This document shows, piece by piece, positions 6,498 through 32,356 of a stretch of DNA of 64,000 nucleotides. The notes under the pieces were generated by a model that was not told the DNA's origin, did not search any database, and worked only from the letters and a program-made list of their open reading frames with translations. Every line of letters starts with the position of its first letter. The first letter of the stretch is position 1. A program made the position numbers and the translations under genes. This DNA is from Podarcis melisellensis (lineage: Eukaryota), in NCBI GenBank assembly GCA_964234715.1, contig OZ174278.1; one strand, written 5' to 3'.

Positions 6498-6949
6498 CTA
6501 ATGAATAGTTCTTGTCTCAGAGTTCCTATAAATTTCTTCCTCGTTCTCTTCCTCCTCAGAAGATGTGGCATTACTGGATGGCGTATGGAGGTGGTTCGGG
6601 GCCCCAGTGGCTTGGCACACATACCATTCATTGAGATTGGTGACCTGAGGAGAAAGGTTGACAGGGCGGCCCCTGCCAGAGTCCTGGAGAGGGGACAGAG
6701 GGGCACCCAGTGGTGTCCCCGTGGGTTGGTAGCCATGAGATCCTGGGGTAGGAGAAGGCGGCGGGGATTTGCAATGGATCTTCATGTGCTTGCGCAAGGA
6801 GCTCGGATGTGTGTAAGACTTGTCACAGCCTCTGACTTTGCAGAAATATGGCTTGTCACTGGTGTGGACATGAGAGTGTTTCTTTCTGTCACTGCTATTG
6901 GCAAACTTCCTGTCGCAGCCATCAAATTCACATTTAAAAGGCTTCTCTC
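6498..6949 (-). CDS. ZIC5: ZIC5 coding exon 2 (zinc fingers 4-5, C-terminus, stop)
   Basis: Acceptor ttctctttcag|GA at 6949 (phase 1). Translates (G)[66 protein letters not shown]...[16 protein letters not shown]...RTIH*. KKHSHVH and the extension beyond NEWYV are ZIC4/5-subclass features. Confidence 0.96.
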
Positions 6950-8899: not shown

Positions 8900-10620
8900 C
8901 GAGATGCCCATGCCATCCTGATGTTTATTTTGGTCTTGTCTCTGACGAAAGGTTCACGTCAGAGTTTAACCATTTGCAGATTATCTCGGTTTTAAGGCGA
9001 GAGATGCGCAGTCGAAAAGCAACGGTTCTCGCTGAGGAAAAGGCTGCTCGCTCCCTTTTGCGCGCCGAGAAAGGAAACTTCACCGCCTACTAATTCGAAG
9101 CGAGGTCGGAGGCCCGTTTCCACAAACCGCGCGAGCGGTTCAGGGCTCAGGGAGGCAACAACTAGCGGCATCGATCAAGAGACAAGCCGCCGGCTATCTT
9201 TAAAAACAAAACCAACCACACGAAAGCCAAGCGCAGGGCGATTTCCCCCCACCACCATTGGGAGCTCAACTCGTTCTCAACCAAACAGAACAAAAAAAAA
9301 AGGGGGGGGGAGGAAAACTCATTTGCTGCTTAAACCCAAACATACGATCCTTGATCTTGAAACTCAAATTTCTTACGTTAACACGAACCTATTCTGGTCT
9401 TAGGGGAGAAGCCTGTAGGAGAGCGAGAAGAAACCAAGAAGGGCGCGAAATTGCAAAATTACGCACAGAAATGCCGAGGTTGCTCCGGACAATCTTACAA
9501 CTCCCGTTTGGCTGCGTCAAATGAAGCGGGAGGCGGAGCATTTTGACTCCCGGGCCTGGGAATCAGGGACCCCTCGGTTGGGCAGGAGGAACCTCCTGGA
9601 GAGAAGGGGAAAGGGCGCCTGAAGCCGCTCTCCTCGGCTTCCGGGGAGTCGTTTTGCCCTCGCCCGCAAGAGGAGAAAGTGGAGCTGTTAACGGGCAATA
9701 GAGCTGCTTATGCTACAGTCAACTCGAGCTCCCTGGCCAGGGCTTCCGTGCCAGCACGTGGCCGTGGAAAGAGTTCCCTGCCAGCACCGGATCTTGCAAA
9801 CCGTGCAGAAGCGTTTTGCAACCGTGTGCCCCTGCAACACTGTTGCAGAAAAAACACCGAGCAGCTTTCTGCGGCGCTCCTCGGCCCCTCCGGATCTTCA
9901 GTCGTGGGTCTTTTGTCTGCAACAGGCGGTGGGGATCGGGCCGGCTTCGGATCCCCACCCAACCCTACCCGACCGATGGGCACCGGTCAGGAGGAGCGGC
10001 GGGGCTCCAGCTATTCCCCCACCTGCAGGAGCCTCGGCCCGAAGGAACCAGACTCGGATCTTCTTCCCAGCGGCAGTAGCAAGGGCACTGTGTGGGCAGC
10101 CTCAAGCGGGCGAGGGCGAGATGAGCCGAACATCGGAGTTCTCCAGCTGGAAAAGGAGCTGTGTGAATGGAAGGACGAGCTGGAAAGCCCTCGCGAGGCT
10201 TTCCTCCTGCCCCTCCTCCCAGAGCACCAGCAGGGTTTTCCCCGGGCGAGAGCCCTACGATTACTGCGCAGAAACCAGCCCTTGCAAGTTGCAAGCATCT
10301 TCTTTAGGAGAGTCTGCAAAACTCCCAGTAAGGCCCTTCCGGAGCAGACTCGGCCTCCAAGGCCTAAAGGCACCGCGCTCCTCTTCGCTTGCAGGACAGA
10401 TCCACACCCCCCCACTCCCCGCTCCATGGGGCTGCGTGGGAGGGGGGTCTCAGGGCTCGCACAGATGGGCTCAACCCTGCGGATTCACCATCTAAAAATC
10501 GATAGCTTTTGCCGCCAGGGGCTATTTGCATGGGAGTTTGAACAGCGCGTTGCACCTTGTCCGCCTCGCCACCCCCCTTTCCTTTTCCTTTTTTTTTTTT
10601 TTTTGCAACAACACACAATA
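8900..10620. promoter_or_regulatory. Intronic CpG island in ZIC5 intron 1
   Basis: Abrupt rise in CpG and GC content from about 8.9 kb compared with the CpG-poor 2.8-8.8 kb segment (visual estimate). Confidence 0.6.
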
Positions 10621-11782
10621 AATCATGAAAACAATTAGGTGGAGCCCCCTCCGGCCTTTGCCCCCCCTTCCCTATAAGCAGCCTCCGGTGGATAATATCT
10701 GTCTACACGCAACTATAAATCCCAACCGCCTTTTAAGTGAAGCCAAAAGGCCAGGGGCAAATCAAAACCAAGCTGTAAAAGATACAGCGCCATAAACGGA
10801 ACTTCATTGAAATGGCTAGTCTGGCGGAGACACGCACAAAGGCACACCCGCGTCGCCTTCCCTTCCCATTTGTTCTCAAAAGCACTATTCCGAATCGCTA
10901 TAGCAGCGCTCCCTCCATTGAAACACACCTTTAAACCAACAACATATCTTTTAAAAGCCCCTGCCTATCACTTCCCCAAAAACAACTAAGGGAGAAAAAC
11001 TCCCCCCGGGAAAGTAAAATATTGGTGGTCTCATTTGAAAAGTACCCCCTCTTGAGAGGCAACATGATCAAATCCCCTGACTCTCTCCTTCATATATAAA
11101 AAAGAAAACAAAACCCAAACAAATAAAAGCATAGGAGAAACTTTTTGAAAAGTGAATTGACCAGAATAAAGTTTGGGGTTTGCCCTTTCTTTCCACTATC
11201 TAAGAGGAGTACTGGACACCATAGGTGCCGGCTCCCTGGGCCCCTGGTGCCCGAGGACCCACAAAATTCACCATGAAGGGACCTGGCCTGGCACCCACAA
11301 ATTTCGTCGCCAGGACCATGTACGCTGCATAGCACCCACAGCCCCGGGCACCCACGGTCGCGGGGCCAAACAGGCACTCCTGCTGGGCACACCGCAGGCC
11401 TTCGTGGGACTCCTCCGTTCTTCCCACTTTCGTGGGAGCTCCTAGCTATCCACAGCGCTCTTAGTTTGCCTGCTGAGGAATTCTGTGGCGCCGGGAAGCC
11501 TTCCTCGCTCTCACCAAAACCGCAGCGGGCACAACGCAGAAGACCCGCGAGCCATTCCCAAACCACGCATACACAGACAACGCAGACATATCAAGGAAGA
11601 CTCACTCTCCCACTGCAGCCCCAAAGAGCTGGTGAAATTACTTATTCATGACAAACGTCACACGTCTGAGGGTACGTAGGAGATAGAGGAAGGAGGGAGG
11701 AGGGGGTAGAGAAAAGAAGCCAGCACCGCGCGCCGGAGAGACGCGGCCGGAGAAAGGCGCGCGCTCCGGTCGTGCCACCCAC

Positions 11783-12986
11783 CTGTGTGCGTCCTTTTGT
11801 GGATCTTGAGGTTCTCGGAGCGCGCGAAGACCTTCCCGCAGCCGGGGAAGGGGCACGGGAAGGGCTTCTCGCCCGTGTGCACGCGGATGTGGTTGATGAG
11901 CTTGTACTTGGCCTTGAAGGGCTTCCCTTCGCGGGGACACTCCTCCCAGAAGCACACGTGGCTGCTCTGCTCGGGCCCGCCGACGTGCTCCACCGTGACG
12001 TGATTGACCAGCTCGTGCATGGTGCTGTAGGTCTGCGAGCAGGGCGGCGCGGCCGCCTCGGCCTCGATCCACTTGCAGATCAGCTCTTGCTTGATGGGCT
12101 GCCGCATGTAGCGCAGGAAGGCGGCGGCGGCGGCAGCGGAGGAGGCGCCCGCAGGGTGGTGATGGTGTGGAGGCGCGTGGTGCGCATGTGCGGGAGGCGC
12201 TGGCGCCTGTTGCAGGACGGCCGCCGCCAAGTTGACCGGGTAGCCTTGCGGCGCGGCGCCGTAGGACGCTTCGGAGGCGGCGGCGGCGGCCGCCACGGAC
12301 GACGGGCGGAAGGGCTCCACGCGCCCGTAAAACTCGGCAGCCGCCGCGGCAGCCGCAGCCACGGCCAGCCCCAGCCGCATCTGCCCGTTGAGCGGGTGGT
12401 GGCCTCCGGACGGGCCCGCCGGGTGGTCGTGCAGCCCCGGGAAGGCGGCGGCGTGAGGCTGCTCGCCGCCGGCGCCGTAGGTGCCCGCCGACGAGATGAA
12501 CATGGGCGAGCTGGCCGGGTGTTGCTGCAGAGGCCGCTCGGCCCGCCGCGGCGCCGCGTACGAGGGGCTGCCGGCCGCGCCGTTGGCGCCCGCCTGCGAC
12601 GACGAGGCGAAGGCGGCCTCGGCGCCGGCCGGGCTCAACTTGAGCGCCCCCGACGCCACGTGCTCCGGCCCGAAGGGGGCCGCGGCAGCCGGGTCCGAGG
12701 AGCCCAGGTCCCCCGGGTGCAAGGGCTGGAAGCCGCCACCGCTGGTGGCGCTGCTGCCTCCTCCGACGCCGACGCCATGCAATGCGGCCAGGTCGGCCAA
12801 GCGCAGGCTGGGGCTCCTCTTGCAACTCAGCGCGGGCTCCATGGCGCCGCAGCCCCGGGGCCCATCCAGGCGCGAGGGGGTCGCCTGGGCCGGCCCCGAG
12901 GGGGCGGTGGCCTTCCTCCCCCTGCCTGCCGCCGCCGCCGAGGCTGTTGCTGCCGCCGTGGCCAGCGCCGCCGCCTTGCCAAACAT
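11783..12986 (-). CDS. ZIC5: ZIC5 coding exon 1 (N-terminus, ZF-NC, zinc fingers 1-3); ATG at 12986 (551 aa total) or 12842 (503 aa total)
   Basis: MFGKA...[19 protein letters not shown]...LNGQMRLGL...[18 protein letters not shown]...[58 protein letters not shown]; donor CAG|gtgggt at 11783/11782 (phase 1, compatible with exon 2); divergent from ZIC2 as in the known ZIC2/ZIC5 pair. Confidence 0.96.
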
Positions 12987-12999
12987 GGAGCGATTAAGC

Positions 13000-13200
13000 G
13001 GCTCTTTAACTTCTTTTGTCTGCTCCGTTTCCCAACTCGGCTGCTGCTGCCATCCTCTCCCCGCTCTGGCCTCCAGCGATTGGCAGAGCGCTCGGCACAT
13101 TTGAGCGGCGCGGTTGGGAACCAGAGTTTGGAAATGTGCGCGGGTGGGATTGGAGGGAGGCCGGTGATTGGCAGAGGCCAGGCCAGCGCGATTGGCTCCC
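13000..13200 (-). promoter_or_regulatory. ZIC5 proximal promoter with four CCAAT boxes
   Basis: ATTGG at 13079, 13149, 13167 and 13191 (all CCAAT on the minus strand); TATA-like GTTAAAGAG near 13002-13010; CpG island context. Confidence 0.7.
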
Positions 13201-13520
13201 ATTCAGGCCGGGCGCTCAGCGGGGAACCGCCCTCGCGCTCTTGTCTGCTTTCGCGCTCTCGCTCGCTCTCCCCACCCCCCGACGCCCCTTTTCTCGCTCT
13301 CGCGCGCGTTTCTCCCTCCCCCCCCCAAAAAAAGTTGCACTTGCTGAAAGGAAGGAAGAAGGGGAAAAAGTTAGCGCCCGGCCGCAGAGGGAGTGCCAAG
13401 CGAGCGGCGTGCCAGGGGGAAACACGCGGCGGCACGCTTGCTTGGAAACTGTCAGGGAAGGCAGCCCGGATCTCTCTCCAGGCGCGCAAAGGAGAGTTGC
13501 TGCTTCCCAGTTACCTGGGA

Positions 13521-13621
13521 TAGAATTGTAGAGTTGGGAGGGACCCCCAGGGTCATGTAGTCCAACCCCCCTGAAACGCAGGAATCTTTCGCCCAGCGTG
13601 GGAATCGAACTCACGACCCTG
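13521..13621 (-). mobile_element. 5'-truncated tRNA(Lys)-derived SINE with CR1-type 3' tail
   Basis: Minus strand reads AGGGTCGTGAGTTCGATTCCCACGCTGGGCG (tRNA-Lys-like 3' half, B box), then AAAGATTCCTGC...GGTTGGACTACATGACCCT...CCAACTCTACAATTCTA (CR1-like tail). Confidence 0.8.
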
Positions 13622-13859
13622 ATATGAGCTGTTCAGTGAGGAGCCGCCGCAACTTTTTGCCCAGCCTGAAACCACTGCCTACTGCGACTCGGCATAATGT
13701 TCTTGCGGGCACATCAGCTGCAAGTTTTAAAGAGTGTTTGTGCCCGAACTTAAAAACACACCGGGAGGGCATTTGCTCGTGTGAAAAAGGATCCTTGGTA
13801 CAACAACCCATGATAATTGGTAATGACATACTTTACACCTTGGTGAGAACGACATAAGG

Positions 13860-13985
13860 CACTTGGGAGGGTTTGAAGCAGAGGTTGGATGACCATCTGC
13901 CATGTATAATGGAGTTGACATTCCTGTGTTGCCAAGGGTTGGGCTAGATGACCCTGGGGTTCCTTCCAACGGTATGATTCTATGT
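13860..13985 (+). mobile_element. CR1 LINE 3' end fragment
   Basis: TTTGAAGCAGAGGTTGGATGACCATCTG...GGGTTGGGCTAGATGACCCTGGGGTTCCTTCCAAC...ATGATTCTATG, the typical CR1 terminus. Confidence 0.8.
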
Positions 13986-16701
13986 GTCTATTTTTAGGAC
14001 TTGGAGCCTAGGGCTGCGATGGCACCCACCAGACTGTAAGCTTCTTTGTAACTATTTATAGGTAGACTCAGTATGCAAGGCGAGCGTCCTAAACGCCCTA
14101 AAATAAATGCGCCCTAAATGAATTGTATGGATGTAAATCGCACAAATAAATACAAACTCAACAAGTGGATGGGGAGCTGTGTAATTCATATACAAGCGCA
14201 TATGAAAGTCCCGTTGCTTTCATTGACTTCCTCTCCAGCACATGTGCTTAGGACCGAAGCGTCGATTGGAAGGAGATATTTTGGTGCAGTTACAATTATT
14301 ACTGGCTTCAGAATAGAAGTGAATATAAGCTGTTGCCTTAAACGCCGAGACACGACTGCGGTAGTCAAGATACGCAACAAATGCTTCATGAGAGTTTCTT
14401 CGTGACTGTGTGGAAAGAACTACAACGATTCATTTCCCTAAGTAATGGAAATAACTGCTCCCATAAGCTGGTGTAAAAAGAATTAGTTCTTAGGGCGGGG
14501 TAGGGGGGTTCATCTCAAACGGCTGAGTCTCGCAGGAGACGTCAGATCCGCTTCTCCATCTCAATGAAGCCTAAAAATAGATCAGTCAGGTCTTGCTCTT
14601 TTTAAAAAACGTGGCTGATAGAATGAATCGTCAGGATGCGCCATCCTTACTTTTGTACGATTCTTCTCTCTCCTTCCAACACTCCCGCCTCCACCGTTTC
14701 CCTGAAATTTCCGTCCTGTTTACACAGGAAAACCCTAAATCCCCGTGTACGCTCCTGCACGCCAGCGCTCTGGGAGGAAAGCCTGCCTTTGAGCTGCTGG
14801 GACTTATTTGAGGAACAGGTGTACAGTCCTCGGGGGAAATTTCGCGTGGACGTTTCCTGCGAGGATGCTGGTGGGGTCCGTAGGATGCTGAGAAATGTAC
14901 GCCTGCGGATCGAACCGGAGCAGGGGTAGAGGTTGGCGCCCCGATCCGAATCCGTGCGTTTTCCCCACCCCTCCTCATTTGGTACAAGTCCATTAATTTA
15001 AATAGATGTGTGGATTCTGTTGGAAACTTGGGAGACCTATTACAAATTAACTGAATTTACGAATGGAGCGGCAAACACCTGCACATTTCCTTAAAAAAAA
15101 ATTCAAATGCACCAGAAAAGTGGGGTGTGGGTGGGACTGAGCTTTCAGCTCTGAAAATAAAGGAGGAGGGACGTCGCCTTCCTTCTTTTCGCGACCGGCA
15201 AAGCTGAACAAAACTTAGTCGCCGCAGCGGGAGCAAGTCCTGGAACAGAAATAGGCAGTAGTATTTCCATAATGCAAAGTAGCAGCGCCTGAAATAGCAC
15301 CGAAAAGCTCTTGGGGCGGCGCTAGCACTTGGTTCAACACGCCGCACTGCATGGTAAAGGCTGACTTTTTGGCAACACGTCTTTCCAGTAGTTCTGCGCC
15401 TAATTTGAAACAGGCGGAGACGAGGTGAGCCAATTTCAGTCCTCGGAGTACATGCAGTCAGACGCATTCCCCATTTTTAAGTTAAAAGAGAGAGAGATGG
15501 AGAATATGAGAGAGGGAGAAAATCTTTCTGTTAGGGACCACGTGAAAATCGCCAACAGCTCTCCAACTAGCCCTTAGGTCGCCGAGCTAGCGCATCGCGC
15601 AGGCGGCCAGGCGTTTGATACATTCATTTCAGGGGTTTCCATAAAGAGATCTTGCAACCCAACTATTAACATGCGGGCTTCACGTCCTCTTTTCGCCTTG
15701 TGCAACCTCGCGCCTGTTTTCTCTGAAGTAAGACCCACTGCCTCCAATGGGTCTTATTCCCTAGTGTGTTTAGGATTGCAGCTTTACAGACACCGTACAA
15801 AGTTAAAAGACACACACATAAGCATACCGGTGTGATGAAACTCACTATTATTATTATTATTTTGCCCCCAAAGCCGGCTCCGCAGGGCATCAACGTGTTT
15901 CCAAATTCATTTTGAAGCTTGATTGCTGATCAATTTTGATTTTTTTTTGGGGGGGAGTCTACAGTATGGGGGTCTTTTAAAAAAGAGGGGGCTGGGTTGC
16001 CTGATAGATAGTTTTCGAATGAAATGAAAGCTTCTTTCGAAACAGGAATTTCTTGTTTTTTTAAGTATGAAAAATATATTGAGTTATACTTGAATTTCCG
16101 ATATGTAATGGTTTAAACGGGGCGCGGGGAGGGGGAGTTCCAAACCTGAATAATAGTTTGGAAGTTATGTCCTGGCCTCCGTGTACAACTCTTGTTAAAC
16201 GCAGCGTGATATGGATCTGTCATCGATTTAGTGCGTCTTAATTCAAATATATGTCGCTGATCAATTCCCTTGTTTGTGGGGACTATAAACAGCGGAGAGA
16301 TGGCTGGGTGGACAGACAAACATGGATGGCAGGTAGCGAATAAGGCTTTTTAATCGTGAAAGTTGTAGTGGACTTGCAGGCAGATTAATTCAAACCTATG
16401 ATTTTCCCCAGCTGCTATCAGTGAAAGGGTTATCTTTGCGATAAGACAACTTTTGAAGAAGCATGCTGTTTCTTGCATTAAATTTGCATACTGTCAGCTG
16501 CACTGCGAGGGCACGCACGGGAGAAACCGTGCACGTTACAAACAAGAGGCACGGTCCAGCAAAACTCAAGCACTTTGTTCAGCAATCTTCCCATTGAAGC
16601 CAATGGGGCTTATGAGCAATTCGCGCTGGCTGGGTGGTGCCGCAAATGTTCCATACAGATAGAAAGGGCACTGTGGACCATTCTAGCCTCTGAATAAGGG
16701 A

Positions 16702-16825
16702 CACGGCCTTATACCGAGCCAGGCCATTGGTCTATCTATCTCAGTATTGCCTACACTGACTGGCAGGCTCTCCAGGATTTCAGACAGGGGTCTCTCCTGG
16801 CCCTTCCTGGAGATGCCAGGGATTT
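16702..16825 (-). mobile_element. Decayed squamate tRNA-derived SINE fragment
   Basis: CCTTATACCGAG..CCATTGGTCTATCT..CTCAGTATTGCCTACACTGACTGGCAG..CTCCAGGATTTCAGACAGG..CTGGAGATGCCAGGGATT; related copies at about 19372-19530 and 54030-54290. Confidence 0.6.
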
Positions 16826-17016
16826 TAAGATTGCTGTAAGTCTCTTCCTGGTCAAGGCAGAGATGTGCACCGTAATTCCGAAATGTATGTTATTCCAAGT
16901 AAGCGAACAAACACACTATTTGATTCTAAACCGTCAATCTATTAAATATGGAATCTCTTCTCCTCCTCACGTTTTTTTGCTGTCCCCCCTTCCTCCCCCG
17001 CTTCTTTACTTCCCCT

Positions 17017-17075
17017 CTTTTCTTTTCTTTTCTTTTCTTTTCTTTTCTTTTCTTTTCTTTTCTTTTCTTTTCTTT
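17017..17075. repeat. (TTTTC)n microsatellite
   Basis: Direct reading. Confidence 0.9.
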
Positions 17076-19013
17076 CTTTATTAATTTCAGTCCACGGCAC
17101 GTTTAGCAAATCAGCTCTCCAGAGTTCGTGTTTTTGTTTGCTTGCTGCTTACGGCATTTGTTTGACGGCGGCATTATGCAAATATATGCTAATGATCACG
17201 AAGCCCATTTGCAAGTAGTTGTCTTTAGTGCACACATGTTATTGATATTTAGCGGGAGGGGGGGACGATATTCCAGAAGAGAGAAAATGCCTTCTGGGGA
17301 ACAATTAAAACGAGAGAGCAATTAACAGCTCTTCTCAAGAAGATCTTTTTTAAAAAAAAAAAAAGAAAATGAAAAAACAGCCGTGCAGGCAGTAGAGGCA
17401 CGGGATTCTTCAGGCAGACAAAACAAACAGACACACACACCCTTGAAAAATCCTGCGCGCACACTTGCACGGGAGTAAGTCCTGTTGTATAGCTTTGGAC
17501 TTAACTTCCGCGCAAACCTGCTAAGCTGTTCTGATGAAGGCGCGGATTCTCCTCGGGACGCGCGCCTTGGATTCCTACCCACGAGACGACGCAGAGGTCA
17601 GCTCTGCGTTGTACTTACTTAGACGTAGCGTTCACGGAAGCCAGCACAGCTTTGTTTAGGAAAGGCAGGTCTCGTCGAGGGTAGCTGGAGGGGAGGGCGC
17701 CACCCATTTTCCTCCCCCGCCAGCACCCTCGGAGTCTGCTGGCTGCGCTTGGATCCTCTCTCGTCTTATCCGCCACCCCCCGCCCCGTCCTTGATGGTGC
17801 TGCGCGTAAAGGAAAAGCTGGACACCCCTCGCCCCAACCAGCTACCCAACATCCCTAAATGAAACCAGTAATACACTCAGGGAGCTGAGTCACGGACTCT
17901 TCGTGGCTTGTCTAACCACTCTGGTTGTTCGGTTCTTCTGTTCCCCTGAACGCAGGCTCCCTCTCTCTCTCCCTCTCTCCACCTCTGCCACTTAACATGA
18001 CCCGACCTGTCAGGTGAGCCTGGTGGCTGCCAAGCTGGCTTTCGGCGACAGGCCCAAGCACTTGCACAAAGCGCTCTGGAGAAGGGCAGCAGGAGGAGGT
18101 GGAATAGAGCGCACCATTGGAGAGGAGGCAGGAACGGGTTAAAAGTGTTCCTTCTTCCGTAGGGCTCTTGCCTCGTCAAGGGACTAGTTCAAGGCTTCCT
18201 ACAGGGCCCGCGGGCCCTTCTGCCTTGCTCAGAAGTGGGGTCTCGGGGGGCGCAGCCTGAGACGCGAGTGGGTTTTTCTCAGAAGTGATTTCCACGGGAA
18301 AGTGGGTAATAAGCAACTTGCCAAGGGAATGCGTTTTTCCATATGAAAATTTACTGGCGCACGGAAGCAAAACTGCCCAAATATGTTGTTTAATTCCTAG
18401 ATCGATTAAACTACCTTGGAAACAAATCCTTTTTAAAGGGTGGGGGAGAGCGGTTTCCTTTCAATGAACCCTCTCTCTCCTGTGACATATTAAGGGGTTT
18501 GCTTACAACACCCACACACCCCTTCACCCCCTCCACACATACACAATTGCTGTCTGTGCCTCTTACCATTGCATATTTGTGCCTAGCCTGGCAAAACATA
18601 GCTGGTTGTTTCAGTGCCAGAGGTGACTTGTTCTGCCTTGCTAAAGAGGGGCTCCACAGGTCCAGTGGCACTCCTCTTCCTTCGCCAGTGCACAGATCCA
18701 CACCAAACAAATGACTCTAACTCATGTCTTTTATCGACAATTTTAATGTTCCTTTTTATTTTTGGAAACCGCTTAGAGGTCCTGTTACAACCAAGCGGTG
18801 TGAATTTTGTTAAATAAAAACAAAGCAACATCACCAGCAAGAGTGCAAGCCTGTACATGTCCACAACTCTGCTCAGAAGGACGTGCTATTCCGTTCAATG
18901 GGGCTTACTCCCAGGTAAGTGGGTGTAGGATTGCATACTAAAATGACCCATGTATGTTGTGGGGAATGTCCTGCTTTAGTCTGGCGGGCATACGCAGCCA
19001 AGTTTCAAGATCA

Positions 19014-19095
19014 AGGCTGCAATCCTGCATGCACTTACTTAGAAGTAAGCCCCATTTAAACCCGCGAGACTTCCAAGTAAACATGCATAGGCTTG
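19014..19095. repeat. Short palindromic MITE-like repeat copy
   Basis: GGCTGCAATCCT..GCACTTACTTAGAAGTAAGCCCCATT...ACTTCCAAGTAAACATGCATAGG; a neighbouring copy at about 18845-18936. Confidence 0.65.
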
Positions 19096-22000
19096 TGATC
19101 TTCCATACATACTTGGGAAGTGGGATGACATAAAGGAGGGCATATAATAAGTATTTCTGATGGTTGGTATAGGTATATATAAAATGTCCTATGACAGATA
19201 TCAACCATCTGGATGATTTACCCGTGGGGAACGTCATCCCGCTCCTTTCCTTTTGTCCCCCAACATTGCCTCCGAATGCTGACGTGGAACCAGAGATCTG
19301 AGGACATTTTATGGAGTATAGAAATGCGAAGGCTTTTAGAGAAATCACAAGCGCACCAACTTAAACAGAAGAAGTTGCCTTACACAGGGTCAGATAATCG
19401 GTTCATGTAACTCGATATTGCCTAAAACACGAACCAGCAGGTGCTCTCCAGGGTTTCAGATAGGGAGTCTTTCGGAGCCCTGTCATGGCGAGATGTTGGA
19501 GGCTGGACTATGGACTTTTGGCCCTTCCTGCAGGTCCCGAGTACTTTAGTGGTTTTCTGTTTCTATGTTATTTGATTAATAACGATTTTTCCTTTGGCTG
19601 GGGAAATTACAACACTGAGACTGCAAACGTTTGTAAACATACCATAACTTCCACTGAACCCGATGGAATTTAATTCTGTGTAAATGTGCCTGGAAGCTTG
19701 CTCGGTTTGGAAACTATTTTAGAAGATCCTCGGGCAGCTCAACTCCTATGCACGTTTGCCTGGAAGTAAGTTGCACTGGCATGGTGGACTTACCCAGTTA
19801 ACAGTCCTACACAGCCTCTACTCACGACGGGTGGAATGGAGTTCAACGGGGCTTACTCTCAGGTAAAGGGAGATAAAGTGGGAGACTAAAAGCTGAGATT
19901 CCTTAAACTGCATCTTCCAAAATTAGCAGCCAAACTGCAGTGCCATCATTCTCAGCTACTGGAAGGAACTGCGCCATATTGATCAGCTTTTAATCACTTT
20001 TTTTTAAAAGTGCATTATAAAGCTGATGCGATCATAGAGCAACAACTGCTTGATCTACTACTTCACGTTTACTGAGAAATAATTCCCCCTCTATTCAGTG
20101 GGTCTTGCTCATCATCGGCAAGTGTCTAAAGGACTGCAGCCTTAGAGAACCGAAACAAAGCTGTCACGCTCAAGGGGGTACAGGAGGGCCATTGATGAGT
20201 TGATAATGCTATTTCTGATAGTCTCGCTATCCCATAATTCCTCCCCCCCTTTTAAAATAATGCGTAGTGTGCACATCTACTTTCAGGAGGGAAAACGAGG
20301 GAGAAATTCAATGCGTGTGTGCGGATACACATGTGTATCTATAAGCCTATATAGGCGCATCCTTCCGGTTCCCTCTATTTTCCCCCCCACGGTCAACGAT
20401 TGGAAGAAGCTGTTCCGATAAATCAAACGGTGACACTTTGACGGCTGGCCTTGTATAAGCAATATGGTTCCCATATGGCCCCGTTATTTATGAATGACAG
20501 CAGAAAGTGTATTACATATTCGCTCGAGAGCGGGAAAGGAGAGCGCTTTACTTACGGACAACTTGCCCTGCTTCCCCTAACCCGCAGCGGCAGCCTCCCA
20601 TTGAAAGGGAGAGGAGCCGAAAAAGGATAGGGCAAGGTAAATGGAGCAAAGTCCTCAGGGAAGCGTCCTTTTTAAAAAAATGAAAATAATAAATCCAAAA
20701 CTAGCGACCAAAAGACAAGCAAACAAAAACAAGCAAACCAAAAACAAAGAACTCCCTAAGATCGATTTTGCAAAAATGGAGCATTCATTCCACATGTCTT
20801 CTATTTCAAAGGCGGAGTTCAGCACTGATTCAACTCTCTCCCATTGAAATGAATGGTTCCTTTTGCCGGGATCGTGGCCCGCGGTTAAAACACACACGCA
20901 CCAGGCAGAGAGGTTTGTCTTGCGGATTATGCGCGTCTTAGCAAAACCAACACAAAGCAGGCCTTATCTTCCTTGAGACTCCTCTCTCCCCAAAACCCAC
21001 CGCTGCTGCATAACACTGAAACCGCTGGCCAAGGCGGAGAATAATAAATTTTAATAGTGGGAGGGCATTTCGCTGTATTTCTCTGTGGACACCCTAGGCG
21101 TTGTAGTGAGCCTGGCCTTTTTTAAAAAAAAAAACCAAAACCAAAAAAAACTCAGGCATTTAAAAGTTACAACTTTGGCTGAGACTTTCATTGACTTCCC
21201 ACTTTGCTTGTATATTTGGCTTCTTGTAGACTAAAACCTGACAAAGCGTTTACAAAAAAAGAAAAGAAAAAAGAAAACTTATTCCAACATGTCCTTTTAC
21301 AGAAGGAGGCTCTCTGCCCCCTGCTCTTCCCGCTCCAGCAGCACATGCCGTCTTCAGAGGTCAGAGGTCGAATGGCCTAGAAGTGGCTGAGCGAGGGGAT
21401 ATCAAAGGTGACCTGCAACTTAATATCCTGTTGATGAGCCTGTTGAATTTACAAGTGTCTGTGATACAGACAACAATCGTGGGCAAGTGAGGAGCCACTG
21501 AAGAGAGCTTGTCCACCTCCCAGTCTTTTCGGGTGAAGCAGAGGAGGCTGGGCCTCGACAGGATTTCTCAAATCAGGATTTGGATTTTACAGGAGAAATC
21601 AGACACCTCTTCTGCACACATTTCTGTCTTGTACAATTTAACAACAACAGCAACAACAACACCAGAAGCCAGCACCATATTTGCTAGGAAACAAATCTAA
21701 TTGATTTCAGTAAGAAGTAAAGGAAGCATAGAAACCTAACAACCTATTGGATCAGATCCAGCCAAAGTTTGATTTCAATAGGGGTGAAAAACCATTCATA
21801 GCTTGAAATCAAGGGACGGAACAACCTGACCCTATGCATACTTACTCGGGAGTAAGATGCTAAATCACTTGCATATTAACTCCTAAGTCAGGGTGCATGC
21901 AGTTTCAGAACTCATTGCGCTTGGCTGGCTTCTGCCTGTTTGCTTGGGAGTAAATCCCATTGACTTCGCGCGAAAGTATTTTCGACTCAGGCTGAATCAG

Positions 22001-23122
22001 AGGTGCATAATTTTGCCAGTAAATTTGATTGAGCACAGTGGGACCTCTGAAATAAACGTGCATAGGATCGGGCTACACGGGGAGGCTGGATTCCAGACGC
22101 TTTTTGGGTGGGGGAGCTGAAGTCAATGGGATTTGTTTGGAAGCAAGCTTTCCTTTGCAAATATAATTCTTATACAGTCACCTACACAGAGACAGCCCTG
22201 TCCTCGGGTCAAAGGAAAGCCAAGCCACAGCTAAATAAGCTCCATCACGGGGACCCAGCAAAGGCGCAGCCCTAGAGATAAACGGATACCGTTGAGTTCC
22301 CCACCCCACACACCCCCAGATGCCAGTTGCAGGGGAACGGTAGCTCAGAAGCGGCAGATCATTGCAAAATAACGAAGACAGCGAGAGACACTGAGCGAAG
22401 CTGCCTTTCCTTCGTTCTAGCCTTGGAGAAAGCAAAAAGCAAAAAGCAGAAGCGTGGAAGGAAACTTACAGACCAGGGGGGGCATGTTTCCCCAAGAGCT
22501 GGTGGCGATGGTGACAGACCGGTCACGTATCTAGCAGGCTGTAGGCCGGGCCCCCCAAGAAAGCTACTCTGGCTGAGGAGGAATCCGATCCCTTCTCTCC
22601 TTCCCTTCGCCCTGCTAACCCACTTCCCGAAGGGATTTTGACTGCTGGCCGCTTTCTTCCCTCGCAAAGAATGAGCTTTAAAGGCTGTACTCCGGCCAAT
22701 GGCCCATGAAAGGGACGGCAGGTTTCTTTCTTGGCTCCTCTTCTCCCCCCACTCCCTTCCTTTCCTTCTCACCCCCGTGACATTGGTTGGGGGGGGGAGA
22801 AAAAGGAGGTGTTTTTTTTTTGGCTGTTTGGAGAGAAATAAAGCACTTCTGGGGAGGGGGTGGAAGGACGGCGATCTAGCTTTGAACTTGGATCAGCTCC
22901 TCTGTTTCCTACCGGGAGGGGAGAAATGGGAAAGTTTGAAAGAAAAGCGGCGTCCAGCCTGCGGGGGACTCCGGCCGGAATTTACGAATTTACCTCCCAA
23001 AAGTGTCCTGAACAAGCCGCCGAGGCCGTTAGACAGCGGGGGAGGGATCTGAGAGAAAGGAAAGGAGAGAGAAAGAAACGTGTGGGTGGGTGGATGTGTG
23101 AATGAGACTTGAGGCTACATTC

Positions 23123-23255
23123 NNNNNNNNNNNNNNNNNNNNNNNNNNNNNNNNNNNNNNNNNNNNNNNNNNNNNNNNNNNNNNNNNNNNNNNNNNNNNN
23201 NNNNNNNNNNNNNNNNNNNNNNNNNNNNNNNNNNNNNNNNNNNNNNNNNNNNNNN
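23123..23255. other. Assembly gap (133 N)
   Basis: N run. Confidence 1.
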
Positions 23256-24849
23256 AAATATTCTAGGAGCCTTGTCACAGTTCCTTGAAAGTGTTCCACT
23301 ATAAAGCGGATGGGATTTACCTACAGGCGGACGCGCCTTAGACCAGGGCCTAAAGGAACTGCGCGCAAGGCTCCGTGGTGTTTGTCTTGCTCCTCCAAGG
23401 TCTCTGGATGTCGGAAGGTGCGGGGGGACCTTTTTAGCTCTGCTTCTCTTTGCCAGCGCTCAAACCCTGGAGAGAAATAGGTAGGTGGGTGTGTGGGTGT
23501 GTTGGGAAGTCAGGCCCAGATAAACGCAGGCTGGTTGGGTCCATAGAAGGGCGGGGGGGGGGGGGAGAGAGAAGCGCCCCACCACCTCCATCCTGCAAGC
23601 TGGCAAGGGGCACTGAGGGAGCTGGCCGAGGGCTGCGGACAAGGAAGGGATGGAGGCAGTTTGCGATTTGGAGGAAGGAAGAGCCACGCGGCCGTGAGGT
23701 GTGCAAGGCTCACGCTCGTTCTGAGAACAGCGAAAAACGGCTCTTTCAGCGCCTAGATCCACGCCTAAAGCTATACCAGGCAGCTGGAAAGAACAGAGTC
23801 CGTTCATGCAGCGTTTCCAATGGACTAAAATGCATCTTCGTGCCCAAATAAAAATGTAATTTAATCAAGGAAGGAAATCATGGATGATGTACTATTTATA
23901 TGTGCGCATTATGTATGTGCGTGGTACATCTAAATAGCTCTCTCTACCTGTATCTCCTTCCTTCTCCCTACAAGGACTCAAAATCGGTTTGGAAATGGGC
24001 CTGTGCAGGTGCAAAAGAATACAGCAGAAAGCGTAAAAAGGTTTTGTCTTATGCTAATATGGCCTAAGGGGGGGGAATAGAACACCCCCCCAACCCAGGA
24101 GCAACCCCATTTCCTTTTCTAGTTTCCATTCTCATAAGACCACAGAGCTCATTTGTATTCCTAAATGGGAAAAAGAAAGGCCGCCGTTATTTTTCCTAAA
24201 AAGACGGGGAAATATTTCTGGATACTGCCCTTTTTATTTCCTCAGCAAATTTGCTTTGGATTGCAGGTTTGGGTGGTTTTTTAATTTTTTTAATCTAAAC
24301 AAGCTCATTCAGGAAACAGATCTGTCCTGGCAGGAGTGTGTAATGTGTATTTTCAGTTAGCAATCTTAGAATCTAGTTTGCAAATTTCCGTTCGTGAGGC
24401 TTTGCGATGTGATTTGTTACAAACACACACAAACGCAGCGGCAAAAGGTTGCAATCACGGGTTGTGGCTTTTTTCAACACCCCTTCCCCGCTATGCAGCT
24501 CGCTCCCATGCCGCCTCCTGACAACCGCCCACTAACCCGCTCTTTTCTTTTACACTACTCCGAGACATCTCTATTTACACCCGTGTCAGCAGCCTCCCAG
24601 CGAAGTCCATATCCTGTTGGAATCGATGGGAGGGAAACTCCCGTCGGTTTTTAGCGGATCTGAATGGCACCTTCGCTCGGAATCTTTCACAAAACGCACA
24701 CGCAGATATTCTCCATCCCAGATATTCTCATCTGCTGTGGTTCCCTCTCCTTTGACACCCCCTCGCCCAATCTCTCTCTTAAAAAACAAAACAAAAAAAC
24801 ATGCCTTGCTCTCTCTCTCTCGCCACCCCAAAGGGTCCTTTTGGTCCGG

Positions 24850-26547
24850 TTTCCCCGCGAGAAACGCACCCGAGAGGTAAACTGGATCTCGTTGGGAACC
24901 GATCCCGCCCCCCTCCCCACCGCGCCCCCCTCCCCCAACCCACCCTCTGGCTGCCCTATGATCCGAGCGCTGCCCCTCTCTCGCCTCTGCCCGGGGCGGG
25001 AGCGGAGGGGAGGGGGAGCGGAGGGGAGGCGGGTCGGACCAGGGGACGCGCGAGTGGCTATTAGCCCGCCTTGGGGGGAAGGCTTGGATTGATGGGGCCG
25101 GGCCGACCAATGAGACGGCGCCAGGAGATCGGCCTGGCTGCTGTTAAAGGGGGCGGTGGGAGAGGAGCTGCCAGTCCAGCCTAGGAACTAGCGGGAGAGG
25201 CTGGGAGGAGGAGGAGGAGGAGAAGGGGGTGGCGAGGAGGGGGGGATAAAAAGCAGCCACAGCAGCGGCGCCCACCGCAACCAGCAGACGGAGGCGAGAG
25301 GCGAGCAGAGGGAGAAGCCGGCCAGCGCCCCGGGAGGAGGACCGACCCGCCCCCCCCCCCCGCCAAAAAAGAGGAGGAGGAGGAAGGACCGCATCTCACG
25401 GCTGGAGCATCTCCATGGCGGGCGCTGGCGGCGGTGCCTGAGTGGGACCCGCGCCCGGGCTGAGGGACGGACCTTGGGCGCTCCACTCCCCCCTCCGCCC
25501 CTCCGCCTGTGTTATTGTTCTGGGCTGCCTCTCTCTCTTTTTTTCTTTTACAAATCCGCATCTCTCCCCCTCCCCTCCCCCCCCTCAATCTCGTCCCCTC
25601 CTCCTCCTCCTCCTCCCCAACTTAAAGCGAGCGAGGTTGTGGCGAGGGAAGAGGCGCCCGATTCCTCCCTCTCGTGAGGAGAACAGCGGCGGCGGCGGCG
25701 GCGGCGGCAACTTTGGAGCCCGTGAGGCGGAACCGAATGGCGGGCAGAGCGGGAGGCGGAGGAGGTGGCGGCAGCGGCAGCGGAGGAGAAGAAGAAGAAC
25801 GGGAATAATATATCTATATACACACACATATGTGTGATATATATATATATATAAAAAACAACAAGGGGTGGTTAGAAGAGTGGGTGGGGGACCCGAATAT
25901 TTCAGAGGAGGGGCTGGAGAAGGCGGGGAGGGGGGCACCGGGGCGGGGTAGCAGCGCAGCGGAGAACCGTGTGTTTGTTTTCTGAGCGGAGAGTGTGCGT
26001 AGCGCGCGAGCGGAGAGCCGGCCACTCGCGCGCGCCCCGGCGTGTGCGTGAGCGCGCGCGCGCGAGGGAGTGTGCCTATATATCTCCTCGCCTGTTTGTG
26101 TGAGAGAGAGAGGGGCTGTCGGTGTGGCTGTGGCGGTGTGACATCTCTTCGCCAGAGGGCTTGTGTGTGTGGTACTGTTGTTGTTGTTGTTGTTGTGGGT
26201 AGCTCTTTCCCCCCATTTCTCCCCCCTCCTTCTCAGGGAAAGGCGAGTCCCCTCTGCGTCCCTCCCTCTCCCCCCACCGCCCCTCTCCTCTTCCCTCCCT
26301 CCTCGGCTCCCTCTCTCTCCCTCCCCTCCGCCCGCTCCCCTCTCTGTGCCTTCTTCCCTCAGAGCTGCCCGCCCGCCCTCGCCTCAGCTGCTTTAATACC
26401 CTTCGGCTGGCCGCCTGCGCCTGAACTCTCGTCGTCGGCGCGCGGCTCTTTCTCCCGCTCGCGCAGCAGAAGAAGAAGAGGAGGAAGAAGAAGAAGAGGA
26501 AGACAGAGAGCCCCTCGCTCGGACCCTCGCCGGGGCTCCTGGGCGGC
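24850..26547 (+). promoter_or_regulatory. ZIC2 promoter CpG island / 5' region
   Basis: Very GC/CpG rich; CCAAT at 25107, GTTAAAG at 25143 with an adjacent GC box, TATATA at 26077, (GGC)n and purine/pyrimidine tracts. The TSS cannot be determined from sequence. Confidence 0.7.
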
Positions 26548-27640
26548 ATGCTTCTGGATGCGGGGCCGCAGTTCCCGGCGCTGGGCGTGGGCTCGTTCGC
26601 CCGGCACCCTCCTCCTCCGTCGGCGGCCGAGATGCAGGAGCGCGAGCTGAGCCTGCAGAACAGCTTCGTGGACTCGGCGGCGGCGGCGGCGGCGGCGCAC
26701 CTGGGCGCCTTCAAGCTCAACGCGGCGGCGGCGGCGGCGGCGGCGGCGCACGAGCTGTCTCCGGGCCAGGGCTCGGCCTTCAGCTCGCAGGCGCCCGCTT
26801 ACCCGCACGCGGCGCATGTGGGCTCCTACTCCGCGCCGCCCTTCAACTCCCCCAGGGACTTCTTGTTTCGGAGCCGGGGCTTCGGCGACGCGGCGGCGGC
26901 GGCCGGCGGCGGCCAGCACGGGCTCTTCGGGGCCGCGGCGGCGGCGGCGGCGGCCACGGGCAGCCTGCACCACCCGCACGCCGAGGCGCAGAGCCACCTG
27001 CTGTTCCCGGGCATCGGCGAGCAGCACGGCGCGCCCGGCTCGCCCAACGTGCTCAACGGGCAGATGCGGCTGGGCTTGCCCGGGGAAGTCTTCGGCCGCT
27101 CGGACCAGTACCGCCAGGTGTCCAGCCCGCGCGCGGACCCTTACTCGGCGGCGCAGCTGCACGGCCAGTACGGGCCCATGAACATGAACATGGGCATGAA
27201 CATGGCGGCGCACCACGCGCACCACCCGCACCATGCCCACCCGCACCATGCCCACCCGCACCACCACCATCACCACCACCACCCGGGGGCCTTCTTCCGC
27301 TACATGCGCCAGCAGTGCATCAAGCAGGAGCTCATCTGCAAGTGGATCGACCCCGAGCAGCTGAGCAGCCCCAAGAAGAGCTGCAACAAAACTTTCAGCA
27401 CCATGCACGAGCTGGTCACTCACGTCTCCGTGGAGCACGTCGGCGGGCCCGAGCAGAGCAATCACATCTGCTTCTGGGAGGAGTGTCCCCGCGAAGGGAA
27501 GCCCTTCAAGGCCAAGTACAAGCTGGTCAACCACATCCGCGTGCACACGGGCGAGAAGCCCTTCCCGTGCCCCTTCCCCGGCTGCGGGAAGGTCTTCGCG
27601 CGCTCCGAGAACCTCAAGATCCACAAAAGGACGCACACAG
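26548..27640 (+). CDS. ZIC2: ZIC2 coding exon 1 (ZOC, poly-Ala/His tracts, ZF-NC, zinc fingers 1-3)
   Basis: [20 protein letters not shown]..., ZOC-like [12 protein letters not shown]2-type [26 protein letters not shown]; donor CAG|gtcagt at 27640/27641 (phase 1). Confidence 0.97.
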
Positions 27641-29958
27641 GTCAGTCCACGAGGGATTTCACGCTCTTTGCCGGGTCGGAAAGGGTGGTTGGTGGGTGTG
27701 AGACTGTGGGGAAGGGAAGGGGGCATTGCGACACAAATGCACAGCAGGAGAATCCTTTTCCCCTAAACCTCCCCGTGCATGCTCCCGCACATGAATCTGC
27801 TTACTCGGAAAGGTGTTTAATTTTGTCCAAACCCTTTAAAGGAAGTGATGCTTTATTTGATCGTAAAAAATAAACACGTAAGAAGTAAAATAAAATTGCT
27901 TCCAAATGTCTTCCTTCTCTTAAGGCTGCCTGAACTGGGCCGGGCTCCTCGGGATACTTAGGGGAGATGCAGTGGGATCAGATACTTAGGGAAAAGTAAG
28001 ATACACTGGCATCAGTCAGTTGCCAAGGGAGTCTCTCCTTCAGAGTGGGACGGCTCCCTTCAAAGAAGCAAAAACCGCCCGAGCAGATAACTGGAAATAT
28101 ACGAAGGGACCTTACAGGTTAATTCTGTAGAGAAGCGAGTGTTGTTCCTGTCGGTATGGTCTACTTTTAAGGAAATCCGTAAAGCTGAGCAGCTGACTAG
28201 GAAATCTCTTCCTTTGAAATCCACCGGCTTCATTTCCAAATATATTCAGCTCAGAGGTGTTCCTGCAATGAACGCCGCGTTTCCAGAAAATGGGTAAATA
28301 AGTGGGTAGTTTAAAAAGGCATAGTTGTGCCGTTTTATAAATGTGATGGTAGGAATCTAAAACAGAGCTGAATTTTACATTTTGTATTTTAGACCTATAT
28401 TCTAGAAAAACTACCCTTAAGAGGGAGGGGGGAGCTCTTTTCCTTTCTCCGCCCCCCTGGTCATTTCACCGCGCTTTTCAGGGACTGCTTTCCATTAAAT
28501 TGAAATGGAGTGAGGCGGGACCATAAAATTTTCTCATTTGCAAAAGTGTTTTGAAAGTCTGACTTGGGGCGCCGGAAGGCGGTTTTCCACTAATTTATTA
28601 TTTTTGTTAAAGCAACATGTAATAAACAACAGAGGATTTAAGGTTGATAAACTTCCGGGGGTAGGATTCCACCCCTTCCTAACGCTGCCACCCCAAAATG
28701 AGGACTAATGGGTGAGAAAGGAGGCCGCGTTTCTGGGTGATAGAAATCGTGTGAGTCCAGGTAGTGGAATCAAACAACTGCGTTTCCCAGGCTCCTAGAT
28801 AATTCTTACTTCAGCCGGCCAGATTTCTACTGGAGCATTTTTATTTTTATTTTTGGGGTCCGCACCCTACCCCGCCCCGGGGGAAAAAGAAGACCAGCAA
28901 ATATTTGAGCAATTTCCGGGCATCAGTGTTGACTGAGAGAAAGGAGCAAAAACTCTGTGAGCCTTTCTGGTTGTGTTGCTGAAGTGCTAAGAACGGGTTT
29001 AGGTGCGAGACGGGCTTTAACAAGGTTTAGCAAATCCGAGACGTTGATTTGCATGGAGATGGCCGCGTTTTGCGGGGGGGGGGGGCGGCGGCTCTGAGCG
29101 GATGTCTTTAAGGAACAATTTAGGTGCTAATGGAATTTCGCGTTAAATTGCGCGTCTCTCCCACCTCCGGTTTCAAGGGCGGGGGAAGGATCCGGCGGTG
29201 GCTGTGTTTGAGTTCTCACACCTACAAATTGCTCGGAAATCTGGCGAAGGGGCGAAGAAGCTCTAGGAAAATTCCAAGGGAGGGTTGTGCATGTGTTTTT
29301 TGCTTCGGTTTCTCTCGCCCTCTTCGCCCCCCATCATCCCCAGCGGATATTTTGAGAACTGACTTCCAATGTCCTTGCATGAAAGGGGTGAAAAATACTG
29401 CAGCAGCCTGCTCAGATCTGGAGTCGTTTGCGGCTTGACGCGGTTTAAACAGGGGGTGGGGGTTGGTTCTGGTCCGGTGGCTGTTTTTAAATGCACGAAC
29501 TGGGAAAGGCTCCTTGGCCTGGCTTTTAAATGCAACACCAGTTGGAATGAAAACAAAAGAAATACGTATCCCGAAAGAGACACGCAAATCTCTTTATTGG
29601 GTTCCTTGGGGAATCGCGCTTTTAAAAACAATGACCACAGACCTGAGGACTTTCTTGAATTCCCCCGTTTTCCTTGTATTAGCTGGGACCCTGGCCCGGT
29701 ATTTCTTTCCGAAGCTGCATAATCCCCTGCACAACTCACCCAACTCATTTCCCTCACATCCTAAATTCGACTGAGCTCCTGCGGAATTCTCAGACGAACA
29801 TTTAAAGATCAGATGCCAATGAAAAGAGGCACATACGAAAAGGAGGTCGTTTTCCTTTAGCTGACCAAAAAAAACCCCGAGGATGTTCAAGTTTCTTCCA
29901 AGATCTCACAGCCACTAAATGTTTGTTTTATGGTTCTTGGTAAAAGATCGCTTTTTAG

Positions 29959-30303
<345 letters not shown>

Positions 30304-30643
30304 TAGCCCAAGGCTGCGGAGTTATTGGGAAGCAAGTCCCGCTCAAACCGGAGTGGTTTCCCAATAAACCTGCTTCAAACCAAATTCCAAAGAAAATGTT
30401 GTGTATAGCCGGAAGAGAGGGACCTTTTGGGCTCCAACCCAGCTTCCTGATCTGTTACTAACTCAGGGGGATTTATGCAACCTTACTAAATGTAGGATTT
30501 CAGCACTGGGGAAGGGTCGGCGGCGGTGCTGAGCCTATTGAGCGTCTTGAAGCAAAGGAAAGGGGTGGGAGAGATCTGGGAGCCTTTTCTGTGTCCTTTC
30601 AACGCAAGTTGCTTAGTTTGCTTTCTCGCTGTTGGCCTGGCAG

Positions 30644-30994
30644 GTCCACGAATCCTCCCCGCAAGGCTCCGAGTCGTCGCCCGCGGCCAGCTCCGGCTAC
30701 GAGTCGTCCACTCCGCCGGGCTTGGTGTCCCCCAGCGCAGAGACCCAAAGCACAGCCGCCAGCAACCTGTCCTCTGCAGCGGCCGCCGCGGCTGCTGCTG
30801 CTGCCGCCGCCGCTGCGGCCGCAGTCTCGGCGGTGCACCGGAGCAGCAACGGCGGAGCGGGAGGAGGCGGCGGCGGCGGGGGGAGCTCGGGCGGCGGCGG
30901 AGGGGGCAGCGGCGGCGGCGGAGGAGCGGGCAGCGGCGGAGCCAGCGCCAGCCACGGCGGCCTCACGTCCAACTTCAACGAGTGGTACGTCTGA
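30644..30994 (+). CDS. ZIC2: ZIC2 coding exon 3 (C-terminus with 16-Ala tract, Gly-rich segment, stop); full protein 535 aa
   Basis: Acceptor ggcag|GTC; [30 protein letters not shown]...A16 VSAVHR...SNFNEWYV*; exon lengths 1093+164+351=1608 nt, in frame. Confidence 0.97.
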
Positions 30995-31160
30995 AGAGGC
31001 CTCCTGGCCCTGCCGCCGCCGCCGCCGCCGCTCCAGCCAGATGCTTCGAAAATGAAGGAAGGAAAGCAGGAAGGAAGGAAGGAAGCCGCCGTCGAAGTCG
31101 CTCTCCGCCTTCCCTCTCTCTCTTTCTCCACCCCGCCGCCCCCTTTTGTTTGGACTGGGA

Positions 31161-31310
31161 NNNNNNNNNNNNNNNNNNNNNNNNNNNNNNNNNNNNNNNN
31201 NNNNNNNNNNNNNNNNNNNNNNNNNNNNNNNNNNNNNNNNNNNNNNNNNNNNNNNNNNNNNNNNNNNNNNNNNNNNNNNNNNNNNNNNNNNNNNNNNNNN
31301 NNNNNNNNNN
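31161..31310. other. Assembly gap (150 N)
   Basis: N run. Confidence 1.
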
Positions 31311-32100: not shown

Positions 32101-32264
32101 NNNNNNNNNNNNNNNNNNNNNNNNNNNNNNNNNNNNNNNNNNNNNNNNNNNNNNNNNNNNNNNNNNNNNNNNNNNNNNNNNNNNNNNNNNNNNNNNNNNN
32201 NNNNNNNNNNNNNNNNNNNNNNNNNNNNNNNNNNNNNNNNNNNNNNNNNNNNNNNNNNNNNNNN
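32101..32264. other. Assembly gap (164 N)
   Basis: N run. Confidence 1.
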
Positions 32265-32356
32265 GTTTCAGAATTTTTTTATTTGAAGGTTCATGTGGTT
32301 TCATCATTTCTTGTGATATGTTTTTTTTTTTTTGAGAGTAATGCATACAGAAATAT

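Follow-up and report, generated by a model that had tools for sequence, protein, structure and literature searches.

Probable recurrent gene conversion between the inverted paralogs ZIC2 and ZIC5 of squamate reptiles

The 64,000-nucleotide stretch of Podarcis melisellensis DNA analyzed here (contig OZ174278.1 of assembly GCA_964234715.1; hereafter the window) carries the zinc-finger genes ZIC5, on the minus strand, and ZIC2, on the plus strand, as a divergently transcribed head-to-head pair. A piece of about 240 bases in the first coding exon has very probably been homogenised repeatedly between these two genes by non-allelic gene conversion. Conversion between the inverted paralogs had been proposed in an earlier sequence-only reading of the window, and it is now strongly supported by comparative DNA, by the patterns at individual sites, by a run-length test and by controls.

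Similarity of the two exon 1 tracts

The reverse complement of 11781-12027 in ZIC5 aligns without gaps to 27396-27642 in ZIC2 with 9 mismatches in 247 bases. The final 174 bases contain only 2 of these and include uninterrupted identical blocks of 56 and 116 bases. Eight of the nine mismatches fall in the five codons at which the proteins differ (T/N, S/T, N/S, I/V and V/I), the ninth is a CTG/CTC difference adjoining the V/I codon, and the codons TGT, GAA, AAA and ACA are common to both copies. These features had been described in the sequence-only reading and were reproduced by realignment, as were the 3 synonymous differences in 15 aligned codons of the conserved block just upstream of the tract. 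The heavy synonymous divergence reported for the exon 2 fingers was also recovered. Between Podarcis ZIC2 and ZIC5 these fingers show 27 synonymous and 12 non-synonymous differences in 54 codons, and the proportion of synonymous difference (pS, Nei-Gojobori counting) is about 0.95. The identity had further been said to end exactly at the splice-donor GT. Similarity is indeed lost directly beyond this GT, from where the sequences are unrelated, but the coding exon ends earlier, at 27640 in ZIC2 and 11783 in ZIC5. That exon end is the first G of a Gly codon interrupted by the intron, and the final two matching bases (27641-42 and 11782-81) are the invariant GT of the intron.

The two tract copies are inverted and lie 15.4 kb apart. 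When the two arms were compared by blastn (5000-20000 against 20001-34000), the sole inverted similarity joined 11781-12122 to 27289-27642, and no DNA-level match was found for the exon 2 fingers, which are too diverged.

Tract DNA of both genes was fetched from Crotalus tigris, Pogona vitticeps, Zootoca vivipara and the turtle Pelodiscus sinensis, the one species of the non-squamate DNA sample; Varanus komodoensis is represented by ZIC5 only. The unlinked controls consisted of ZIC1 alone, with DNA from Zootoca and two Crotalus species. Annotated ZIC proteins were found by an exon-by-exon search and from cluster member lists; primate proteins among the hits were set aside. All fetched sequences align by codon over the 243 bases (81 codons) of the tract without a single indel.

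Within species, ZIC2 and ZIC5 differ at 9 of the 243 tract positions in Podarcis, 14 in Zootoca, 19 in Crotalus, 25 in Pogona and 45 in the turtle, with pS values of 0.07, 0.17, 0.22, 0.34 and 0.74, respectively. The tract pS of the unlinked ZIC1 is 0.44-0.46 against ZIC2 and 0.52-0.53 against ZIC5, and the high synonymous identity is thus not shared by this control. In each species the exon 2 fingers of ZIC2 and ZIC5 give a pS of 0.90-1.0. The earlier expectation that synonymous sites should be close to saturation therefore holds for exon 2 but not for the tract, where even unlinked ZIC1 and ZIC2 reach a pS of only 0.44-0.46. The tract is generally constrained and unsaturated, and the linked pair of squamates is still far more alike than the ZIC1 baseline.

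The same contrast is found in the lengths of perfect blocks. The longest ones measure 113, 72, 97 and 94 bases in the four squamates and 20 bases in the turtle pair, and no ZIC1 pair exceeds 29. The core at tract positions 131-228 is identical between ZIC2 and ZIC5 in Podarcis and in Crotalus and shows 1 difference in Zootoca and 1 in Pogona. For the run-length test a permutation script of our own was used, GENECONV-style but not the GENECONV program, which evaluates the longest matching run at 139 polymorphic sites (tract plus exon 2). It gave significant P values of 5e-5, 1e-4, 1e-4 and 5e-5 for the four squamate pairs and a value of 0.93 for the turtle pair, with 0.04-0.58 for the controls (ZIC1 pairs and cross-species paralog pairs). 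In view of its difference count and its short longest block, the turtle pair appears to have escaped exchange.

The base composition of the ZIC2 tract also differs between turtle and squamates. The G+C content at third codon positions (GC3) of the turtle ZIC2 tract (L008:10757-10999) is 0.63 versus 0.80-0.93 in squamate ZIC2. The Pelodiscus ZIC2 tract lies at about one distance from all other ZIC sequences. Of the two turtle genes, it is ZIC5 that comes closer to the squamate ZIC2 tracts, an oddity that may reflect only an A/T shift in turtle ZIC2. GC3 goes up as paralog divergence goes down. However, GC-biased conversion is not supported by the polarised shared changes, which are few and show no weak-to-strong excess.

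Species-wise changes, episodes and direction

Five synonymous sites (153, 156, 165, 192 and 207) differ between Podarcis and Zootoca in the same way in ZIC2 and in ZIC5. The two species differ at 6 positions in ZIC2 and at 9 in ZIC5, and the overlap of 5 has a hypergeometric P of 2.8e-5. Sites grouping the sequences by species outnumber those of the third pattern by 5:0 in the tract quartet of Podarcis and Zootoca, 7:0 for Podarcis and Crotalus and 11:0 for Zootoca and Pogona, and by 3-11 to 0 over the squamate tract quartets. The Podarcis/Zootoca quartet also has 9 paralog-grouping sites, all in or beside the diagnostic codons. Exon 2 quartets, by comparison, have 0-4 species-grouping and 0-2 third-pattern sites, with 20-36 sites that group by paralog. 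At position 171 three states occur (G/G, C/C and T/T), each common to both paralogs of one species.

Maximum likelihood trees were calculated for exon 2, for the core at 98-228 (131 columns) and for the tract ends (1-97 and 229-243). The ZIC5 clade is supported at 100/100 in exon 2 and at 99/96 in the tract ends. The core tree mixes the two paralogs and has no paralog clades, and Zootoca ZIC2 is paired with Zootoca ZIC5 at 93/96. Grouping by species rather than by paralog, which the sequence-only reading had named as the expected support, is thus seen above all at positions 98-228, whereas grouping by paralog is retained in the tract ends and in exon 2. Such a conflict between the tract tree and the exon 2 tree is expected of interlocus gene conversion.

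The distribution of shared bases indicates when the exchanges occurred. Positions 48, 183, 186 and 204 have bases common to all four lacertid sequences and absent from other squamates, and 153, 165 and 192 have bases unique to both Zootoca genes. In Pogona, the state at 171 and the bases at 126 and 195 are common to both genes and found in no other squamate. Crotalus and Pogona have T/T at 165 and A/A at 186 in common, and position 24 is changed in Podarcis only. An episode on the lacertid stem is marked by 48, 183, 186 and 204, one in Zootoca by 153, 165 and 192, and one in Pogona by 171. The contrasts between Podarcis and Zootoca call for an episode in Podarcis or a further one in Zootoca, and the states at 165 and 186 point to an older episode on the stem common to snake and agamid. 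As judged from these sites, conversion has recurred in squamates in no fewer than five separate episodes and is older than Podarcis.

For one event a direction can be given. At positions 232, 237 and 240 the ZIC5 genes of Crotalus, Pogona, Varanus and the turtle have ZIC5-specific bases, and at position 97 this is so for Crotalus, Pogona and Varanus, whereas ZIC5 of both lacertids has the ZIC2 base at all four positions. This places the event before the split of Podarcis and Zootoca and gives it the direction from ZIC2 to ZIC5, so that at least one event ran that way. The converted tract extends to the exon end in lacertids, while in Crotalus and Pogona the identical core stops about 15 bases short of it, at tract positions 225-228.

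Tract residue 33 of ZIC5 (window 11928-11930) is Gln in an amphisbaenian, a skink, Varanus, Pogona, six snakes and one gecko, and Glu in all five lacertids (from separate assemblies), in Elgaria and in two geckos (Paroedura and Gekko kuhli). Glu is invariant at this residue in ZIC2 proteins and is also the state in non-squamate ZIC5. A repeated change from Gln33 to Glu in ZIC5 fits overwriting from ZIC2. Another residue that varies in both genes is tract residue 26 (window 27472-27474 in ZIC2), where ZIC2 and ZIC5 alike have Tyr in birds, crocodilians and turtles and Phe in squamates, mammals and amphibians; ZIC1 and ZIC4 of birds keep Phe. This Phe/Tyr co-variation was considered as a trace of old conversion but is not decisive, since Chelonia ZIC3 also has Tyr.

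Mechanism and alternative explanations

We propose non-crossover, non-allelic conversion between the inverted copies, which would homogenise the end of finger 1 together with fingers 2 and 3. Ectopic repair would need a long stretch of high identity, and only the exon 1 segment offers one; the introns and exon 2 would have no identity usable for strand invasion. Conversion is probably confined to the exon 1 piece because only there do near-invariant fingers preserve enough DNA identity for strand invasion. Identity would be self-reinforcing, in that converted copies with longer perfect blocks favour more conversion, and lineages in which identity has decayed would escape. Purifying selection could then remove converted alleles that lack the five paralog-specific residues, which would leave a patchwork. 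The persistence of the five diagnostic residues inside converted DNA argues for selection against losing them or for short or patchy tracts. The earlier suggestion that selection keeps such residues fits the finding that surviving ZIC5-specific bases in Podarcis are confined to the five diagnostic codons and the positions adjoining them. If a crossover took place in the tracts, the 15-kb interval would be inverted and the 5' half of ZIC2 fused to the 3' exons of ZIC5; given such inversions and chimeras, only non-crossover products would be expected to survive.

The similarity could instead have been maintained without any exchange, by extreme purifying selection at the nucleotide level or by a shared GC3 codon bias. 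The tract is unusually conserved even in unlinked paralogs (ZIC1 and ZIC2 are 88-89% identical), lacertids and the snake have a GC3 of 0.88-0.94, and some codons ending in A or T do not vary among any of the sequences. However, constraint and codon bias predict the identical base in every species and therefore cannot yield changes shared species by species, which is how the paralogs vary at synonymous sites. Moreover, Zootoca ZIC1 has a pS of 0.46-0.53 to ZIC2 and ZIC5 versus 0.17 between those two, and the turtle genes have 45 differing sites although their peptides are nearly identical, which together make an origin without exchange extremely improbable. A template other than genomic DNA has also to be considered. 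Copying of the tract from the spliced transcript of the partner, as RNA or complementary DNA, would explain the stop at the exon end in Podarcis, and lacertid identity does end at the exon-intron junction. Loss of homology at the intron explains this boundary equally well, the identical core of Crotalus and Pogona ends before the exon does, nothing of exon 2 was carried along and the intron is intact. We therefore assign an RNA or complementary DNA template very little probability.

It is similarly hard to credit that the tracts became alike only during assembly or polishing, by correction of one paralog with reads of the other, although perfect blocks of up to 116 bases exceed what many short reads resolve and assembly gaps lie nearby in the window. 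The same signal, with differing boundaries and private differences, is present in four independent squamate assemblies and is lacking in the turtle assembly. No species has lost any of the diagnostic codons within the tract. Podarcis and Zootoca have the ZIC2-like 3' end of ZIC5 in common, and Glu33 occurs in the ZIC5 proteins of five lacertid species. In addition, sampled 31-mers of 10500-13500 are present at 97-99% in contigs of three runs from the same organism and at 83% in a run of another study.

Some points weigh against gene conversion between ZIC2 and ZIC5 as the explanation. The tracts are known from assemblies and not from reads, and artefactual copying during assembly combined with a real substitution in one copy would leave the same signature. 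Enforcing monophyly of ZIC5 in the 131-column core costs 26.3 log-likelihood units, which with p = 0.079 in the approximately unbiased test is not significant alone. Nine ZIC5-specific bases are kept within sequence that is otherwise converted, and this would have to be put down to selection, to patchy mismatch repair or to a number of short tracts. Finally, the contrast with animals outside the squamates depends on a single sampled species.

Locus, comparable systems and implications

The coordinates of the genes and of the parts of the tract are collected in Table 1. Local joining of the exons gave consistent splice sites and a consistent reading frame, with 3 coding exons for ZIC2 and 2 for ZIC5. 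The translation of ZIC2 exon 1 has 0 mismatches and one gap to Zootoca vivipara ZIC2, and the long ZIC5 exon 1 frame differs from Podarcis raffonei ZIC5 by two compensating one-residue indels and one substitution. Orthology is indicated by top matches annotated as ZIC2 and ZIC5, the divergent neighbours and the exon counts of 3 and 2; the Pfam domain zf_ZIC is reported on the orthologs.

Table 1. Features of the ZIC5-ZIC2 region (window coordinates)
Feature	Position	Strand	Remarks
ZIC5 coding exon 1	11783..12842	-	from conserved MEPALS ATG; public Podarcis raffonei model begins upstream at 13202
ZIC5 coding exon 2	6498..6949	-	fingers 4-5 and C-terminus including stop; unconverted control
ZIC2 coding exon 1	26548..27640	+	
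ZIC2 coding exon 2	30050..30213	+	fingers 4-5; unconverted control
ZIC2 coding exon 3	30644..30994	+	C-terminus including stop
ZIC5 tract copy	11781..12027	-	second half of finger 1 and fingers 2, 3; coding 11783-12027; 11781-82 = intron GT
ZIC2 tract copy	27396..27642	+	coding to 27640; 27641-42 = donor GT
Probable converted core, ZIC5 side	11799..11896	-	tract positions 131-228
Probable converted core, ZIC2 side	27527..27624	+	tract positions 131-228
ZIC5 exon 1, terminal 10 coding bases with ZIC2-like state	11787..11796	-	tract positions 231-240
ZIC5 exon 1, homologous unconverted upstream part	12028..12122	-	ZFNC / finger 1 start; indels and synonymous differences
ZIC2 exon 1, homologous unconverted upstream part	27289..27395	+	
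Assembly gap	23123..23255		ZIC5-ZIC2 intergenic; outside both tracts

The ZIC5 frame stays open for 120 codons above the MEPALS start (12843-13202, minus strand), and the upstream ATG is used in the public Podarcis raffonei model of 623 residues. Models of squamate ZIC5 range from 258 to 661 residues, so the true start of ZIC5 is uncertain. The assembly gap between the genes is situated some 3.3 kb before the ZIC2 ATG. The sequences to either side of it (21600-23122 and 23256-24800) are collinear and co-oriented on one gap-free Zootoca contig, where 105 bases separate them in place of the 133 N found here; the gap is intergenic and does not affect either tract. Just past the ZIC2 stop (30994) there are two further gaps, at 31161-31310 and 32101-32264, which probably fall in the 3' untranslated region. 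G+C content is very high over the whole locus, and long runs of Ala, Gly and His codons occur (e.g. 27200-27290 and 30800-30960). At least seven organisms hold 60-99% of the 31-mers of 10500-13500, and a dense set of very close relatives has thus been sequenced. In Zootoca (L010:1-2574), ZIC1 has ZIC4 as its head-to-head neighbour, about 7.4 kb upstream of its own start; the fetched flank of 10 kb takes in the 5' end of ZIC4 but stops short of the ZIC4 finger exon.

The ZIC family is considered to have arisen by a tandem head-to-head duplication before the vertebrate genome duplications, followed by formation of subclass A (ZIC1-3) and subclass B (ZIC4-5) (PMC7403390, PMC6175831). Conversion is mentioned in neither of these studies, and full-text literature searches gave no report that ties ZIC2/ZIC5 or ZIC1/ZIC4 to gene conversion or concerted evolution. 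Interlocus conversion as a process is known; for the ZIC2/ZIC5 pair no earlier report was found.

Close parallels are known from developmental transcription factors and from sodium channel genes. Concerted evolution of close, inverted paralogs has been described for Dlxa/Dlxb of Capitella and engrailed/invected of hexapods (PMC3199776). Like ZIC2 and ZIC5, these are neighbouring, inverted and overall divergent paralogs, with near-identity limited to the exon for the DNA-binding domain and including its silent sites, and they too are explained by proximity-dependent gene conversion. Unlike Dlxa/Dlxb, ZIC2/ZIC5 is a vertebrate C2H2 zinc-finger pair that goes back to a duplication older than the vertebrate genome duplications (PMC7403390), its recurrence in several lineages is shown by species-specific shared substitutions, and its diagnostic residues survive in the tract. 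In salamanders, the old, linked sodium channel paralogs Nav1.1/1.2/1.3 and the Nav1.4 exon 26 duplicates underwent non-allelic gene conversion in short exon tracts (PMC8476164). As with ZIC2/ZIC5, these events are exon-sized or smaller, involve linked and partly inverted paralogs and were found by GENECONV-type detection. However, conversion spreads adaptive substitutions in newt Nav genes (PMC8476164), whereas no adaptive change is evident for ZIC2/ZIC5, where homogenisation would be opposed by purifying selection. Conversion between zinc-finger paralogs is also known from the X-linked ZXDA/ZXDB of mammals, where it arose independently in more than one order (PMC2724270; PANTHER 'ZIC and GLI' family). 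These are not ZIC genes, and that report is silent on ZIC1-5.

The subclasses to which ZIC2 and ZIC5 belong separated before the vertebrate genome duplications (PMC7403390), yet part of the DNA-binding domain is very probably still subject to exchange between them. A variant arising in one gene could be copied to the other, and the zinc-finger sequence would not be usable as independent evidence in ZIC family trees. With up to 116 identical bases, short-read mapping, expression counts and variant calls are ambiguous in exon 1 of both genes. The contrast between squamates, with ongoing exchange, and the turtle, which appears to have escaped it, would provide a natural series on the identity needed for ectopic conversion and would also allow tests of the selection that keeps paralog-specific residues in converted DNA.

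A wider role of the exon 1 tract can tentatively be envisaged, although we consider it rather unlikely. The tract might be a long-lived, self-sustaining conversion hotspot across jawed vertebrates that is switched off where identity decays, as in softshell turtles, and that moves amino acid changes between subclasses A and B, such as the Gln33 to Glu reversals seen in squamates of several families and Tyr26, which birds, crocodilians and turtles have in both genes; ZIC1 and ZIC4 might behave likewise. If this is true, the DNA-binding surfaces of the two subclasses would not evolve independently, and ZIC phylogenies based on the fingers would be partly misleading.

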